This document shows positions 2,120-12,856 of a DNA stretch of 64,000 nt, in pieces. The notes under the pieces were generated by a model, which had not been told where the DNA came from, did not search any database, and saw only the letters and a program-made list of their open reading frames with translations. The translations under genes and the position numbers were made by a program. Source of the DNA: Salpingoeca rosetta (lineage: Eukaryota; Protista; Choanoflagellata); contig JAWQFM010000001.1 of the NCBI GenBank assembly GCA_033442325.1, positions 3,118,881-3,182,880 of the forward strand, given 5' to 3'. Positions within the stretch are counted from its first letter, which is position 1. The number at the start of each line of letters is the position of its first letter.

Positions 2120-2609
2120 ATGAGCAGTGCAAGCAAGTCGGCGGCAGCCGGCATGCCGCCGTCCCCGCCAAGTGAAGAGCAGCTGCAGGAGAAGGCACGC
2201 AAGTGGAAGCAGCTGCAGTCGCGCCGCTATGCAGAGAAGCGCAAGTTTGGCTTTGTCGACCCGCAAAAGGAGGACATGCCTCCCTCACAGATTCGTGTCA
2301 TCATCAAGAACCATGGTGACATGTCCAGCCGCAAGTTCCGCCACGACAAGCGCGCTTACCTCGGCGCCCTCAAGTACATGCCTCACGCCGTCATCAAGCT
2401 CCTCGAAAACATGCCCATGCCATGGGAACAGGTACAGTGCGGCGAGTGGTGGCGGTTGGTTGATGGCAAAGGGAACAGGGGACCAGTGGGGGATTGGGGG
2501 AGGGGGGAAGGCACTTGCTATCACTGTCGGTGCAATGTACACGGGGAATGAGCAGTGGTGCGGTGTGCGCACGCACTCATGCACTTGGTTGCAAGCAGCC
2601 ACCCGTTTC

Positions 2610-2647
<38 letters not shown>

Positions 2648-4160
2648 ATACGTTACACACAACACACACACACAATATACGTTACACACACACACACACA
2701 CAATATATATATACGTTACACACACACACACACAATATACGTTACACACACACACACACACACACAATATACGTTACACACACACACACACACATACGCT
2801 CACACACACATACGGTCACACAACACACACGCTCACACACACACATGACAGATTCGCGATGTCAAGGTGCTGTACCACACCACTGGTGCCATCACGTTTG
2901 TGAACGAGATTCCATGGGTGATTGAGCCCATCTACATTGCGCAGTGGGGTACCATGTGGATCATGATGCGTCGTGAGAAGCGTGATCGCCGCCACTTCAA
3001 GCGCATGCGCTTCCCGCCCTTTGACGACGAAGAGCCGCCGCTGGACTACGGCGACAACATCATGAACGTGCCCCCGCTCGATCCCATCCAGATGGAGCTG
3101 GACGAGGAGGAGGACTCTGCCGTGTGGGAGTGGTTCTACGACCACAAGCCCCTCGTGGACACGCGCATGGTCAACGGGCCCTCCTACCGCAAGTGGTACC
3201 TCACCATCCCCATCATGGCCACGCTCTTCCGCCTCTCGGGCTCCCTCCTCTCGGACCTGCTCGACGACAACTACTTCCACCTGTTTGACGCCAAGGCGTT
3301 TTTCACCGCAAAGGCGCTCAACGTCGCCATCCCGGGCGGCCCCAAGTTTGAGCCGCTCTTCCGCGACCTCAACCCAGCCGACGAGGACTGGAACGAGTTC
3401 AACGACATCAACAAGATCATCATCCGCCACTCCATCCGCACGGAGTACCGCGTCGCGTTCCCTTACCTCTACAACAGCATGCCCCGTCGCGTGTACCTCT
3501 GCAAGTACCACACCCCGCCCGTCGTGTTCATCAAGACGGACGACCCAGACCTCCCCGCCTTCTACTACGACCCCATCATCAACCCCATCTCCCACCGCCA
3601 GGCCGTCCGCGCCACAGACACCTTTGACGAGTCGGAGGAGTTTTTCCTGCCGGAGGAGGTGGAGCCCTTCCTGGCCGAGGCGCCGCTCTACACAGACCGC
3701 ACCGCCGCCGCCATTGCCCTCCTCTGGGCGCCCCGCCCCTTCAACACCCGCTCCGGCTACATGCGCCGCGCCATCGACGTGCCCCTCATCAAGACCTGGT
3801 ACCAGGAGCACTGCCCCGCCGGACAGCCCGTCAAGGTGCGCGTCTCCTACCAGAAGATGCTCAAGATCTTCGTCCTTAACGCTCTCAAGAAGCGCCCGCC
3901 AAAGCCCTGCAAGCGCCGCTCCCTCTTCCGCTCCTTCAAGCAGACAAAGTTCTTCCAGTCCACCACCCTCGACTGGGTCGAGGTCGGCCTGCAGGTGTGT
4001 CGCCAGGGCCACAACATGCTCAACCTTCTCATCCACCGCAAGAACCTCAACTACCTCCATCTCGACTACAACTTCAACCTCAAGCCCGTCAAGACGCTCA
4101 CCACAAAGGAGCGTAAGAAGTCCCGCTTCGGAAACGCCTTCCATTGTAAGTGTGTCTGCT

Positions 4161-4213
<53 letters not shown>

Positions 4214-7200
4214 GTGTGTGTGCGTGTGTGTGTGTGCGTGTGTGGCCGGGGGGTGCTTGAAGAGCAGCTGTCTTGACCCGTCTCACCTTTTTTGTCGTCC
4301 TGCTGCTACTTTGTACAAGCCCCTTGTTGTCTTGCTACTCCGTAAAAACTCTTTGTTGTGTCTCATCAACTCACATGATGCGCATCACACCATGTGCAAC
4401 CACCACATGTTCCCACGCATGCCCATACATCTACATGCACATTCACCCCCACGCACACATCATCATCATCATCATCATCTCATACCCAGTGCTTCGTGAG
4501 ATTCTGCGCTTGACCAAGCTCGTGGTTGACTCGCACGTGCAGTACCGTCTCGGTAACGTCGATGCGTTCCAGCTCGCAGACGGTCTCCAGTACACATTCG
4601 CCCATGTCGGCCAACTCACCGGCATGTACCGCTACAAGTACAAGCTCATGCGTCAGATTCGCATGTGCAAGGACTTGAAGCACATCATCTACTATCGCTT
4701 CAACGTGAGTGTCTCCGTCGTTGTCCGTTCGTGTGTGTGCGTGTGTTTTGTTTGTTTGTATGTGTGTGTGCATGTCTGTGTGTGTGTGCGTATGGTTGTG
4801 TGTGTGTGCGTGTGCGTGTGTTTGTGTTTCTGTTTGGCACTCGGTGATTGCCACTCGGTGTTTGTCGGTTTGCTTGCTCCTTGTCAAACACAGACATCCC
4901 CCGCTATTGCTCACAGACAACCACACTCCTTCACTCACCCTCCCTCCTCGTCCTGGTTGCAGACGGGACCTGTGGGCAAGGGCCCTGGCGTTGGCTTCTG
5001 GGCGCCCGGCTGGCGCGTGTGGCTGTTCTTCCTGCGCGGTGTGGTGCCCCTCCTCGAGCGCTGGCTCGGCAACCTGCTTGCGCGCCAGTTTGAGGGCCGT
5101 ACCAACAAGGGCGTGGCCAAGACGGTGACCAAGCAGCGCGTGGAGAGCCACTACGATTTGGAGCTGCGCGCCTCAGTCATGCACGACATCCTCGACATGA
5201 TGCCCGAGGGCGTCAAGGCCAACAAGGCCCGCGTCATCATGCAGCATCTCTCCGAGGCGTGGCGCTGCTGGAAGGCCAACATCCCCTGGAAGGTGCCCGG
5301 CCTGCCCACGCCCATTGAGAACATGATCCTGCGCTACGTCAAGGCCAAGGCCGACTGGTGGACCAACACCGCTCATTACAACCGCGAGCGCATCCGCCGC
5401 GGCGCCACCGTCGACAAGACCGTGTGCAAGAAGAACCTGGGCCGCCTCACCCGCCTGCACCTCAAGGCGGAGCAGGAGCGCCAGCACAACTACCTCAAGG
5501 ACGGCCCTTACATCAGCGCCGAGGAGGCCGTCGCCATCTACACCACCACCGTGCACTGGCTCGAGTCGCGCCGCTTCAAGCACATCCCCTTCCCGCCGCT
5601 CACCTACAAGCACGACACCAAGCTGCTCATCCTGGCGCTGGAGCGCCTGCGCGAGGCGTACAGCGTGAAGAACCGCCTCAACTCGTCGCAGCGCGAGGAG
5701 CTCGGCCTCATCGAGCAGGCCTACGACAACCCGCACGAGGCCCTCATGCGCATCAAGCGCCACCTCCTCACGCAGCGCGCCTTCAAGGAGGTTGGCATTG
5801 AGTTTATGGACATGTACAGCCACCTCATCCCCGTGTACGACATTGAGCCGCTGGAGAAGATCACCGACGCTTACCTCGACCAGTACCTGTGGTACGAGGC
5901 GGACAAGCGCAAGCTCTTCCCGGCCTGGGTCAAGCCCAGCGACACGGAGCCCGCGCCGCTGCTCGTGTACAAGTGGTGCCAGGGCATCAACAACCTGCAG
6001 GACGTGTGGGACACGTCCGAGGGCCAGTGCAACGTCATGCTGGAGACGCGCTTTGAGAAGCTGTACGAGAAGATTGACCTCACCGTGCTCAACCGCCTGC
6101 TGCGCCTGGTGGTGGACCAGAACGTCGCCGACTACATGACGGCGAAGAACAACGTCGTCATCAACTTCAAGGACATGAACCACACCAACTCGTACGGCAT
6201 CATCCGCGGCCTGCAGTTTGCCTCGTTTATCGTGCAGTTTTACGGCCTGATCTTGGACCTCCTCGTGCTCGGCCTCAACCGCGCGTCGGAGATGGCCGGC
6301 CCGCCCACGCTGCCCAACGACTTCCACACCTTTGAGAGCGTGGAGACGGAGACGGCGCACCCGATTCGCCTGTACGCCCGGTACGTCGACCGCATTCACA
6401 TGTTCTTCCGCTTCACCGCTGAGGAGGCCCGCGACCTCATCCAGCGCTACCTCACCGAGCACCCAGACCCCAACAACGAGAACATTGTTGGCTACAACAA
6501 CAAGAAGTGCTGGCCGCGCGACGCGCGCATGCGCCTCATGAAGCACGACGTCAACCTGGGCCGCGCCGTCTTCTGGGACATCAAGAACCGCCTGCCGCGC
6601 TCCATCACCACCATTGAGTGGGAGAACAGCTTCGCCTCCGTGTACAGCAAGGACAACCCCAACCTCCTCTTCAACATGACGGGCTTTGACGTGCGCATCC
6701 TGCCCAAGATCCGCGCCACCTTCAACGACGCCAACCACCGCGACGGCGTGTGGAACCTGCAGAACGAGATCACCAAGGAGCGCACCGCGCAGGCCTTCCT
6801 CCGCGTCGACGAGGAGTCGCAGGCCCGCTTCCACAACCGTGTGCGCCAGATTCTCATGTCCTCCGGCGCCACCACCTTCACCAAGGTGGTCAACAAGTGG
6901 AACACGGCCCTCATTGGCCTCATGACCTACTTCCGGGAGGCCGTCGTCAACACGCAGGAGCTGCTCGACCTCCTCGTCAAGTGCGAGAACAAGATCCAGA
7001 CCCGTGTCAAGATTGGTCTCAACTCCAAGATGCCTTCCAGGTTCCCTCCAGGTTGGTTTTTGTGCCATTGCACGTGGGTGTGTGTGAGGGGGAGGGGGCG
7101 GAGAGAGTGTATTTGTGTACGCCTTTGTATGCTATGCGTGTGTGGGCGTGGGTGGGTGTGCATGTGTTGGCTGTCCTCTTTTCTTCTTTGGCGTCATGAT

Positions 7201-7996
7201 CGCCTGGTTTGTGTGCGCATGCTTGTTCATTATTGCTCCTCACCGCTCACGCTGTTGTCTTCACCTCCACATCCACCCACTCCACCCACCCCAACAATCG
7301 TCTCCTCGCCTTGCATTCACGCAGTCGTCTTCTACTGGTGAGTTTTGTTTTCCTTCTGTGCGTGCGTGCGTGTGTGTGTCAAGTCTTCCCTGCTGCTCGT
7401 CTGGGATTCTGGTCCTCCCTTCGTGCTTCAGTCGCGTGCGCGCTTCAGCCCTCACCTCATGTGATTTCTCTTCCCCCCCCCCTTCCATGAATGCTTTGTT
7501 TTGCCTTTTTCAAACGTACAACGTGTGCAGCCCGAAGGAGCTTGGCGGCCTGGGTATGCTGTCGATGGGTCACGTGCTGATTCCCCAGTCGGATCTTCGC
7601 TGGAGCAAGCAGACGGACGTTGGCATCACCCACTTCCGCTCTGGCATGTCTCACGAGGAGGACCAGGTCATCCCCAACCTGTACCGCTACCTGCAGCCCT
7701 GGGAGTCTGAGTTTATCGACTCGCAGCGCGTGTGGGCCGAGTTTGCGCTGAAGCGGCAAGAGGCCAACGCCCAGAACCGCCGCCTGACGCTTGAGGACTT
7801 GGAGGACTCGTGGGATCGCGGTATCCCGCGCATCAACACGCTCTTCCAGAAGGACCGCCACACCCTCGCTTACGACAAGGGCTGGCGTGTGCGCACAGAG
7901 TTCAAGCAGTACCAGATTCTCCGCAATAACCCCTTCTGGTGGACACACATGTGAGTTCCAATACCTCTGCTTGCACCCTCTGCCGTCTGTTGACTG

Positions 7997-8074
<78 letters not shown>

Positions 8075-8971
8075 TCAGTTGACCTTTGCATGAAGTGTGG
8101 CGGACTCACTTGCAATGGCCCTCTACCACGCCTGCCCCTCACCACACGACCCTCCTGTCCCCCTTCCCTCGCTCTTCTCCTCCCTTGAATTTTCCTCCCG
8201 CACTGCAGGCGCCACGATGGCAAGCTGTGGAACCTGAACAACTACCGCACAGACATGATCCAGGCGCTGGGTGGTGTCGAAGGCATCCTGGAGCACACGC
8301 TGTTCAAGGGCACGTACTTCCCCACTTGGGAGGGTCTCTTCTGGGAGAAGGCGTGCTTCCGCACAACCACCGAGCTGCTGCTTGCCTCTGGTGACATTGT
8401 CCGTGCCAGCGACGTGCGTGTGGGCGACAAGCTCATGGGTGACGACGGCACCCCGCGCAACGTGCAGCACGTGGTCACGGGTCTCTCCCGCCTGTACGAG
8501 GTGACGGTTGCCAGCTCTGACGTGGAGCCGCTCGTGGTCACAGGCAACCACATTCTCTGCCTCAAGCCCTCTGCGCACCTCTCTGTTGATGAGCAGCAGG
8601 AGGAAGTCGCACGCAAGCTCAAGGCCGCAGCCCTGCGTGCCGCCACCGCAGCCACGGGCGATGCCTCCGTCAACGGCGCCGCGATGCCCCAGGCACAACA
8701 GCCACAGGACAGCACGCTGTTTGAGATGACGGTGGAGGAGTACACGCAGCTGCCGGAGGCCGTGCAGAGCAACCTGCTCATGTACCGCCAGGTGGTGTCC
8801 CTCGGCGAGGCGGGCACTCATGCAGAAGCTGGCGAGTGCACCACGTACAAGATTGCGGCCGTGCGCCAGCTTGAGCAGCCGGAGCCATACGTCGGCTTTT
8901 TCGTGGACGGCAACAAGCGGTTCCTGCGCGCGGACTTTCTGGTCACGCACAACAGCGGTTTTGAGGAGAGC

Positions 8972-9003
<32 letters not shown>

Positions 9004-12000
9004 CTCTGGTCTGAACCAGATTCCCAACCGCCGCTTCACGCTGTGGTGGTCGCCAACCATCAACCGCGCCAACGTGTACGTTGGGTTCCAGGTGCAGCTG
9101 GATCTTACCGGCATCTTCATGCACGGCAAGATTCCCACGCTCAAGATCTCCCTCATCCAGATCTTCCGCGCGCATTTGTGGCAGAAGATCCACGAGAGCG
9201 TGGTCATGGATCTGTAAGTTCTTGTTTTCTTGTCCCTTGCCATGTCATTACTGCTGCTGCTGGTAGTTGTGTTGTTGTTGTTGTTGTTGTCATCGTCATC
9301 GTCATCGTTCATTGCGAGTGGGTTTGTCTTTGCGAGCGCTGTTCTCACACTGTGGTAATCCATGCTCGTTTGCCTTTGTTTTGCTTTGCCAACCCCAAAC
9401 CCCCACAAAACAGGTGCCAAGTGTTTGATCAGGAGCTGGATGCGCTTGAGATTGACACGGTGCAGAAGGAGTCGATCCACCCGCGAAAGTCGTACAAGAT
9501 GAACTCGAGCTGTGCCGACATCCTGCTGTTTGCCTCGCAGAAGTGGCCCATCTCCAAGCCTTCCCTGCTCGCGGACACGCACGACGTCATGGACGCGACC
9601 ACCTCCGACCGCTACTGGCTCGATGTGCAGCTTCGCTGGGGCGACTACGACAGCCACGATGTGGAGCGCTATTCCCGCGCCAAGTTCCTCGACTACACCA
9701 CGGACAACATGTCCATCTATCCCTCGCCAACGGGTGTGCTGATTGCCATTGACTTGGCGTACAACCTGCACTCTGCCTTTGGCAACTGGTTCCCGGGTTG
9801 CAAGGTGCTGCTGCAGCAGGCCATGGCCAAGATTATCAAGGCCAACCCCGCGTTGTATGTGCTGCGTGAGCGCATTCGCAAGGGCCTGCAGCTGTACTCG
9901 TCCGAGCCGACGGAGCCGTACCTGTCGTCCCAGAACTACAACGAGCTCTTCTCCAACCAGATTATCTGGTTTGTTGATGATACCAACGTCTACCGCGTCA
10001 CCATCCACAAGACCTTTGAAGGCAACTTGACGGTGAGTTGGGGGCGCTGCTTGCCATGTTCACTGTTTCGTGTTGGTTTGTGTTGGGTTTGTGTTGTTTT
10101 TGGGTGATGTTTGAGTGTTGGTTTGTGTGGGTTTCTTTTGTTTTCTTGTTGTGTCTTGCTCTCTTTTCCACTGATTCACATGCCCCCTTTGGCTCAACCA
10201 ACGACTCACTCACTCACTCACTCACTCACTCACTCACTCACTCACTCACTCACTCACTCACTCGCTCACTTACTCGCTCACTTACTCGCTCACGCACGCA
10301 CGCACGCACGCGCTTTCCTTGTCTCTCAAACATACAACCCCTCGCAGACGAAACCCATCAACGGCGCCATCTTCATCTTCAACCCGCGCACGGGCCAGCT
10401 GTTCCTGAAGATCATCCACACCTCTGTGTGGGCTGGCCAGAAGCGTCTGTCCCAGCTGGCCAAGTGGAAGACTGCTGAGGAAGTCGCTGCCCTGATTCGC
10501 TCGCTTCCCGTGGAGGAGCAGCCGAAGCAGATTATCGTCACGCGCAAGGGCATGCTTGACCCACTCGAGGTTCACTGCCTGGATTTCCCCAACATTGTCA
10601 TCAAGGGCTCTGAGCTGCAGCTGCCGTTCCAGGCGTGCCTCAAGGTGGAGAAGTTTGGGGACCTCATTCTCAAGGCCACGGAGCCGCAGATGGTGCTGTT
10701 CAACCTCTACGACGACTGGCTGCGCAACATCTCCTCGTACACGGCGTTCTCGCGCCTCATCCTCATCCTGCGTGCGCTGCACGTGAACATCGACAAGGCC
10801 AAGCGCATCCTGCGGCCGGACAAGACGACCATCACGGAGCCGCACCACATCTGGCCGTCGCTGTCGGACGAGGAGTGGATCCGCGTCGAGGTTGCGCTCA
10901 AGGACCTCATCCTGACCGACTACGGCAAGAAGAACAACGTCAACACGGCGTCCCTCACGCAGTCTGAGATTCGCGACATCATCCTGGGTATGGAGATTTC
11001 TGCGCCGTCGCAGCAGCGGCAGCAGATTGCGGAGATTGAGAAGCAGACGCGCGAGCAGAGCGCGCTCACCTCCACGGCCACCAAGACCACCAACGTGCAC
11101 GGCGACGAGATTATCACGCACACCACCACCAATTACGAGCGGGCGGCCTTCTCCTCCAAGACGGACTGGCGCGTGCGTGCCATCAGCTCCACCAACCTCC
11201 CGCTGCGCACCAAGCACATTTACGTCAACGACGACATCTCCGAGACGGGCTACACGTACATCCTGCCCAAGAACGTGCTGACCAAGTTTGTGGTGATTAG
11301 CGACCTGCGCACGCAGATTGCCGGCTACCTGTACGGCAAGTCGCCGCCGGACAACCCGCAGGTGAAGGAGATCCACTGCATTGTGATGGTGCCGCAGTAC
11401 GGCACGCACCAGAGCGTGACGCTGCCGACGCAGCTGCCTGACCACGAGTATCTGGACGACCTGGAGCCGCTCGGCTGGATCCACACGCAGCCGAGCGAGC
11501 TGCCGCAGCTGTCGCCGATTGACGTGACGACGCACGCCCGCATCATGAGCGATCACGAGGAGTGGGAGCTGGACAAGACGTGCATCATCACGTGCAGCTT
11601 CACGCCCGGCTCCGTGTCCCTCACGGCCTACAAGCTCACCGTGTCCGGATTTGAGTGGGGCAAGAACAACAAGGACAAGAGCGGCAACCCGGAGGGCTAC
11701 TCGCCCCAGCACTACGAGAAGGTGCAGATGCTGCTGTCCGATCGCTTCTACGGCTTCTTCATGACGCCCGCGGAAGGCTCTTGGAACTACAACTTTGTTG
11801 GCGCCAAGCACAAGACCGCTATGCGCTATTCTCTCCAGCTCGCCAACCCCAAGGTGTGTGGATATGTGTGTGTGTGTCTATCTGTGTGCGTGTGCGTGTC
11901 TATCTCTCTGTGTGTGTGTGTGTGTGTGTGTGTGTCTATCTGTGTGCGTGTGTATGTCTGTATGTCTTGGTTTTGCTGCACATCCGTCATCCTCCTCCTC

Positions 12001-12224
12001 CTTTATCCCTTGCATACCGCACCTCTTCCCCGTGTCTGTCTCTCTGTCTCTGTGTGTCTGCTTTCAACCCTGTCGCTCACTGCCCATGTGCGGTGTGCTG
12101 TCGTATGTGTGTGTTGCAGGAGTACTACCATGAGGTTCACCGTCCCAACCACTTCCAGTCGTTTGGCGCATTGGAAGAGAGTGCCGAGGAATATGCTGCG
12201 GATCGTGAGGACATGTTTGCCTGA
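2120..12224 (+). CDS. PRPF8: Pre-mRNA splicing factor Prp8 (U5 snRNP), intein-containing precursor; join(2120..2431,2852..4145,4490..4704,4963..7051,7325..7337,7531..7950,8209..9213,9414..10032,10348..11853,12120..12224)
   Basis: Near-continuous match to Prp8 motifs (KARKWKQL...[29 protein letters not shown], [20 protein letters not shown], [10 protein letters not shown], RNaseH-like, Jab1/[21 protein letters not shown]). All 9 introns are GT-AG with consistent phases. The spliced length is 7578 nt, giving 2525 aa, or 2325 aa after intein removal, which is the normal Prp8 size. Confidence 0.98.
2600..2845. repeat. Minisatellite CAATATACGTTA-(CA)n, about 5 copies, in PRP8 intron 1
   Basis: The aatatacgttacac core recurs near 2645, 2674, 2702, 2734 and 2766, separated by CA runs. 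Confidence 0.85.
8354..8953 (+). mobile_element. PRP8 mini-intein (200 aa, class 1, no homing endonuclease)
   Basis: Exactly 600 nt inserted in frame between Prp8 FWEKA and SGFEESMK. It begins with Cys ([13 protein letters not shown], block A), has block B T63-G-N-H66, block [14 protein letters not shown] and block G DFLVTHN followed by Ser+1. The borders are not GT-AG. Confidence 0.96.
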
Positions 12225-12856
12225 GCATTTTCAAGGCACAAGTTCCTCCCTCCTCCTCTCTTCTCCTCCCCTAACAACACCAGCCACGCGCACACGCACA
12301 CGCATCACAGCCTACCGTCGTCTTTGTTTCTTCGCTGTGTTTTTGCTGTGATGTGAAGCCCCATCATACGGCCGACTCATTCATCTCCATCCTCATTTGT
12401 TGACCCGCACCCAACAGCTGTTAGCACCTCTACGTGGTCAACCACCCATGTGTCTGTCTGTGTCTTTGTCCGTGGCATCGACGTGTCACATGTGTCACAT
12501 CAGCTTTTCCCCCGTTCCATGCACGACATTGGCGTGTTGCTTTCACGTCACCCCTTCTTGGTTCGTAAACACCGACATGAAAGTATCCACACTCAGGGAG
12601 CGCTCATCTCGCAGTCAAAGAGAGAGAGAGAGCAGCAGCAGCAGCAGCAGCATTGTCATCATCCTCTGTTTCTGATTGCTTGCTTGCAGGCACAAGGTTT
12701 ATGAGCCGAGGTTAGGTTTTTCTGTGTGTGTGGGGGGGGGGGAGTGTGTGTGAAGAGGAGGACTGTTGACACAAGGTACGTTGTGATGACACGAAACACT
12801 CGATTGGAAGGAAACAACGCAAGGAAACGACACGCCCCAGGCTAGCGCTAACGCCG

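Follow-up and report, generated by a model that had tools for sequence, protein, structure and literature searches.

The in-frame insert in the Prp8 gene of Salpingoeca rosetta is its published site-a mini-intein, here placed in a single-copy gene

A 600-nt segment that interrupts the Prp8 gene of the choanoflagellate Salpingoeca rosetta was found to be the Prp8 site-a mini-intein already published for this organism. The explanation that best accounts for the locus as a whole, to which we assign a probability of about 0.93, is that this published element is a class-1 Prp8-a mini-intein that is transcribed, translated and self-excising, and whose homing endonuclease has been lost. The window (the whole stretch of DNA analysed, 64,000 nt in length) was translated across the insert, and the product was compared by eye with the sequence printed as PRP8iA_Salpingoeca_rosetta_CHOANOFL (EGD72084/F2TVI8, site A) in the supplement of Green, Novikova and Belfort (2018, Mob DNA; PMC5784728); the two agreed over all 200 residues. 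The S. rosetta mini-intein at Prp8 site a was first reported by Monier et al. (2013, ISME J; PMC3749507), who gave its length as 201 residues, a figure that counts the +1 residue. The original prediction, made from the DNA letters, had mentioned that PRP8 inteins were known from Salpingoeca; the intein it described is indeed that published one, and its reading was correct but not new. What was already known comprises the intein itself (2013), its full sequence in the 2018 census, and the structure and metal sensitivity of the family (2019); the retention shares, the single-copy status, the structure model and the exon/intron setting are added here. A search of the literature found no experimental study of the S. 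rosetta Prp8 intein.

Translation of positions 8204–9103 of the window revealed 200 codons without a stop at 8354–8953 of the forward strand, in frame inside Prp8, in exact agreement with the coordinates and length first proposed. The encoded protein starts with CFRTTTELL, the Cys1 codon (TGC) occupying positions 8354–8356, and ends with FLVTHN, the Asn200 codon (AAC) ending at 8953. The upstream flank ends in ...FWEKA and the downstream flank begins with SGFEES..., the +1 nucleophile of the C-extein being a Ser (AGC at 8954–8956). Each of the class-1 residues named in the original prediction (Cys1, TGNH, GFFVDG, H199-N200 and Ser+1) could be located. When the intein was aligned with its relatives (alignment A1, 15 sequences), the position-1 nucleophile Cys1 was invariant, as were T63 and H66 of the block B TxxH motif (T63-G-N-H66), T126, G181, V197, H199 and N200, while Y144 was nearly so; block F was recognised as GFFVDG, containing D185, and block G as FLVTHN, containing H199-N200. 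The computed mass of the intein was 21.7 kDa, which falls in the range of 21–22 kDa anticipated for the free protein, and its pI was 5.0. The Pfam profile U6-snRNA_bdg was broken at profile position ~59/60 and resumed directly after the insert, a result also obtained in a six-frame search of the genome. Taking the insert out left a contiguous conserved Prp8, with flanks equal to those of the Prp8 proteins of other organisms. The features of the locus are collected in Table 1.

Table 1. Coordinates of the Prp8 gene, the intein and its subregions, and the flanking exon parts and introns (positions are those of the window)
Feature	Positions	Strand	Basis
Prp8 gene, ends approximate, several introns	2120–12250	+	Pfam on long ORF pieces
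Upstream spliceosomal intron, 258 nt, GTGAGT...CAG, with a (GT)n run, GC 0.56	7951–8208	+	Read from the sequence
N-extein part of the intein exon (Prp8 U6-snRNA-binding domain)	8209–8353	+	Acceptor AG at 8207–8208; U6-snRNA_bdg match
Prp8-a mini-intein, without homing endonuclease	8354–8953	+	Translation, Hom_end_hint, PDB matches, AlphaFold2, Foldseek
N-terminal splicing half, residues 1–72: block A (Cys1) and block B (T63-G-N-H66)	8354–8569	+	A1; pLDDT 96–98
Ala/Gln-rich linker, residues 73–120	8570–8713	+	A1 columns ~80–250; pLDDT 44–70
Conserved segment, residues 121–147 (ends LLMYR), then a short remnant at the endonuclease position	8714–8848	+	A1
C-terminal splicing half: block F (YVGFFVDG) and block G (FLVTHN)	8849–8953	+	A1; pLDDT 93–98
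C-extein part of the intein exon, Ser+1 to ...HESVVMD-L	8954–9213	+	U6-snRNA_bdg profile positions 60–153
Downstream spliceosomal intron, 200 nt, GTAAGT...CAG, phase 2 in a Leu codon	9214–9413	+	Read from the sequence

Membership of the Hint superfamily was supported by both sequence and predicted structure. A Hint/intein profile search had been proposed as a check, and in the 200 residues Pfam detected Hom_end_hint with an E-value of 1.6e-27 and 97 bits, the cut-off being 32 bits. Among solved structures, phmmer ranked 6mwy, 6mx6 and 6owu highest (E 5e-18 to 1.3e-17), all Prp8 inteins from Cryptococcus gattii or C. neoformans, followed by PI-SceI. Scores of this size, from Pfam and phmmer alike, are well outside what chance would produce. 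An AlphaFold2 model built on the 15-sequence alignment had a mean pLDDT of 85.5, with values of 93–98 in the blocks of the Hint core; residues 73–120 were poorly defined, comprising a low-confidence helix (79–101) and a disordered stretch (106–118, pLDDT <50). When this model was compared with the PDB using Foldseek, the Cryptococcus Prp8 inteins 6mwy and 6mx6 were again at the top (E 4e-13; TM-score 0.91–0.92, normalised to the target), and further matches included domain I of PI-SceI, other mini-inteins and Hedgehog Hint domains, the top matches all being intein or Hedgehog Hint domains. No homing endonuclease family was detected by Pfam in the insert, and in alignment A1 the S. rosetta intein shows a gap where its relatives carry two LAGLIDADG-type motifs. 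These results support the view that the insert is a class-1 mini-intein of the Hint superfamily without a homing endonuclease, and, because the relatives hold the endonuclease motifs exactly at its gap, that it was derived by endonuclease loss. The proposal of a mini-intein in a non-fungal eukaryote was therefore borne out: the insert matches Hom_end_hint and is predicted to adopt the fold of the Cryptococcus Prp8 inteins, while its host is a choanoflagellate.

A phmmer search with the intein alone against 1.84 billion representative proteins gave 3618 matches at E ≤ 0.001, 238 of them at E ≤ 1e-10. Prp8-a inteins made up 12 of the 14 best representatives, the other two (P0007 and P0009) lying in non-Prp8 contexts. 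The insertion point FWEKA/SGFEES (here and below a slash marks the junction), called site a in the literature (PMC3749507, PMC5784728), was common to the Cryptococcus neoformans-type protein P0095 and to 20 other Prp8-a proteins among the matches listed; the flanks in P0095 are the same as in S. rosetta, in line with the predicted use of the PRP8-a site known from Cryptococcus. The nearest relatives (P0002–P0005, P0008 and P0011) were from metagenomic eukaryotes, of soil and other origin, and showed 42–55% identity to the S. rosetta intein in A1. The metagenomic Prp8-a relatives share its insertion site and, together with an intein of Acytostelium subglobosum, the motifs EMTVxxYxxLP and GFxVDGNxRFLRxDFLVxHN. 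Most of the metagenomic relatives, however, are full-length, with an endonuclease of ~200–300 residues bearing PYxLGxWLGDG and LAGLxDxxG, which the S. rosetta intein lacks, and they often also carry additional sequence behind block B, at the place taken up in S. rosetta by the Ala/Gln-rich linker. The Acytostelium intein, which belongs with the nearest relatives too and starts with CFSASTSL, is assigned to site A in the spreadsheet of the 2018 census and named 'PRP8iC' in the FASTA file, the other intein of this species being labelled the reverse way (PMC5784728, files 2 and 5); since the CFSASTSL intein resembles those found at Prp8-a in S. rosetta and in the metagenomes, it is probably the site-a one. 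One metagenomic Prp8 gene (L005:164-12936, JGI metagenome 3300060733), which holds P0003 at site a, gave Hom_end_hint matches in four pieces called as separate genes, and in two of these Hom_end as well; this Prp8 may therefore contain some four inteins, as do those of Capsaspora or Anaeramoeba.

The Prp8-a mini-inteins of C. neoformans and C. gattii (6MX6, 6MWY and 6OWU) have the insertion site, the flanks, the class-1 residues and the Hint fold in common with that of S. rosetta, and both types lack an endonuclease. The two nevertheless differ in several respects. Identity to the S. rosetta intein was 32% in A1 for the Cryptococcus type (P0095), and 26% in the structural alignment with the Cryptococcus inteins; the latter have 171 residues rather than 200, the S. 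rosetta intein having the longer Ala/Gln-rich linker, and the residue before TxxH is Cys in Cryptococcus and Val in S. rosetta. In its terminal motifs the S. rosetta intein groups with the CF..DT / RFLRxDFLV(V/T)HN type, whereas that of Cryptococcus is of the CLQNGT / LVLHN type. The next tier of matches to the splicing blocks (E 1e-26 to 1e-11) consisted of inteins of giant-virus-like proteins (P-loop NTPases, ribonucleotide reductase, topoisomerase II and RNA polymerase), thus in other host proteins and at other sites, most of them with TVTHN at the end and T, S or C as the next residue. This agrees with a published network that ties Prp8 inteins to viral inteins (Green et al., 2018; PMC5784728). 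This tier contains hundreds of inteins; those in P0007–P0150 sit in Walker-A loops, with the pattern GxxGxGK/C...HN/(T or S), or in the other three kinds of protein, often two per protein.

In the mechanism that these features suggest, the 600 nt would be expressed, as mRNA and as protein, together with the rest of the single Prp8 gene, and the 200-residue Hint domain would fold and then excise itself. Cys1 would undergo an N-S acyl shift, after which Ser+1 would take over the acyl group; Asn200 would cyclise, aided by His199, by T63 and H66 of block B and by Asp185 of block F; and an O-N shift would ligate ...WEKA to SGFEES..., yielding mature Prp8 next to the released intein of 21.7 kDa. We infer this chemistry from the conserved residues, the predicted fold and the experiments performed on the homologous Cryptococcus intein. 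The ancestor of the S. rosetta intein would have been full-length, with a homing endonuclease of the LAGLIDADG type; having lost this domain, the intein could no longer home and would be inherited vertically.

The Prp8 domains PRO8NT, PROCN, RRM_4, U5- and U6-snRNA-binding, domain IV, JAB/MPN and PROCT were all detected in the long ORF pieces of the gene. Its N-terminus (MSSASKS...) lies in the ORF at 1877–2551, and its last long exon ends near ...LQLANPK, after which an intron-like stretch follows. The intein is contained in one exon (8209–9213). Removal of the upstream intron restored ...WWTH-M-RHDGK, and removal of the downstream one restored Prp8 sequence as found in the metagenomic relative P0002. 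No second Hint domain was detected by Pfam in the long Prp8 ORF pieces of the window. The downstream intron splits the Leu codon before the Cys of ...VMDL/CQVF, a single nucleotide before intein site d of Prp8, which is located 87 residues after site a (PMC3749507). Site d is occupied by inteins in Bathycoccus and Anaeramoeba, and in Bathycoccus a mutually exclusive intron is found in the same codon (PMC3749507, PMC10710043); two of the metagenomic Prp8s (P0026 and P0053) also bear inteins at this site (...DL/C). Several Prp8 introns of S. rosetta contain long (GT)n/(CA)n microsatellites (8000–8070, 2560–2850, ~4200–4270 and 11860–11960), which are read as Cys-Val or His-Thr runs in the ORF translations.

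A family search of the genome (55.4 Mb, 68 contigs) found PRP8_domainIV and U6-snRNA_bdg at this locus only. Hom_end_hint gave a single match in the 55.4 Mb, at G000:C1:3127234-3127503, which corresponds to positions 8354–8623 of the window. Judged from the assembly, Prp8 is therefore a single-copy gene, with no intein-free paralogue in the genome. It follows that every Prp8 molecule must protein-splice; to the extent that sequence can decide, this claim of the original prediction stands.

The idea that such an obligatory step might act as a redox or metal switch is a hypothesis already published for the family, and it was tested in 2019 on the Prp8-a intein of C. neoformans. Prp8 inteins are known at seven sites, about 100 of them at site a, and the structure of the C. 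neoformans intein has been solved (Green et al., 2019; PMC6805012). Splicing of the Cryptococcus intein is inhibited in vitro by copper, through reversible oxidation of Cys1, and by zinc, which is bound by C1, H65, H170 and N171; inhibition by copper was seen in vivo too, and a retained intein was modelled as disturbing the tri-snRNP (PMC6805012). Applied to S. rosetta, this analogy would have the intein co-opted as a conditional switch, in which oxidation of Cys1, or binding of Zn or Cu at Cys1, His66, His199 and Asn200, pauses splicing, so that the paused protein would hold back assembly of the spliceosome under stress. Such a role would add to the explanation of the intein as a selfish remnant and does not exclude it. 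The four zinc ligands of the Cryptococcus intein have their counterparts in C1, H66, H199 and N200 of S. rosetta; with a single-copy Prp8, a pause would hit the whole pool; and the intein persists without an endonuclease and with a host-like codon composition. These same four residues, however, serve catalysis in every class-1 intein and are not specific to regulation, and persistence at an essential site is to be expected of a parasite for which only a precise deletion would be tolerated. Co-option as a switch is accordingly regarded as unlikely, although it is the alternative that fares best. The fuller proposal, that the endonuclease-less intein has been kept as a gate on the maturation of the sole Prp8 pool, sensitive to stress in the form of thiol oxidation or Cu/Zn, is slightly less likely still; what speaks to it here is the presence of the catalytic, metal-binding residues.

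Retention of the insert in mRNA was assessed by the share of 31-mers found in sequencing data. For sampled 31-mers of window positions 7900–9400, this share was 0.95 in three runs and 0.68 in 12 small contig sets from five studies, sets whose RNA nature was guessed; the same sets, with that reservation, contained 1.00 of the 31-mers of the intein itself. Calculated from the exon borders, contigs that lack the two introns but keep the intein should give a share of 0.677, and removal of the intein should lower it to 0.249. The 600 nt thus probably stay in the mRNA, as judged from shares in contig sets that were only guessed to be RNA. At least half of the words of the intein were present in 20 out of 20 runs holding it, from six studies, and all of them in 19 of the 20. 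The GC3 of the intein was 0.815, compared with 0.82–0.94 in the Prp8 exons, while the introns had a GC content of 0.47–0.56; this composition agrees with retention, and the host-like GC3 points to a long residence in the gene.

These data also bear on the proposal that the intein has decayed, no longer splices and persists in mature Prp8, or else that the insert is an artefact of assembly or contamination with a fungal origin. Mini-inteins without an endonuclease can go on to decay, and fungal contamination has been raised for a Prp8 intein found in algal data (Green et al., 2018; PMC5784728). Against decay, the catalytic residues of the S. rosetta intein are all intact in A1, and site a lies in the core of Prp8, where the published model of the precursor predicts that an intein left in place would interfere with the spliceosome (PMC6805012). 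An artefact is difficult to reconcile with the position of the insert within a single exon that has an intron of host type on either side, in a window more than 3 Mb from the start of the contig, with a codon composition matching that of the host, or with the recurrence of its words in the 20 runs from six studies. Both versions of this proposal are considered very improbable. Least probable of all is that the 600 nt are spliced out of the RNA as an in-frame intron and yield no intein protein: a cryptic GT (8353–8354) and AG (8954–8955) do lie 603 nt apart and their use would keep the frame, but this reading was rejected since it would lose the conserved Ser (giving EKA-GFEE), the donor context GC/GTGCTT is unlike the GTGAGT and GTAAGT donors of the gene, the AG is not preceded by a pyrimidine tract, the 600 nt form an intact Hint ORF whose composition is that of an exon rather than an intron, and the contig sets without the flanking introns (guessed to be RNA) contain every intein word.

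The published mini-intein thus remains the preferred reading, and its setting in S. rosetta may be of use for further work. This choanoflagellate is culturable and has a single Prp8 gene, which makes it a place to test the regulation of Prp8 inteins outside the fungi; the single copy, the sole Hom_end_hint match in the genome, the probable retention in mRNA and the predicted fold allow a cleaner experimental design. A 200-residue intein with a linker that looks dispensable is also another candidate for protein engineering. If the gate were real, it would link protein splicing with RNA splicing in a unicellular organism closely related to animals.
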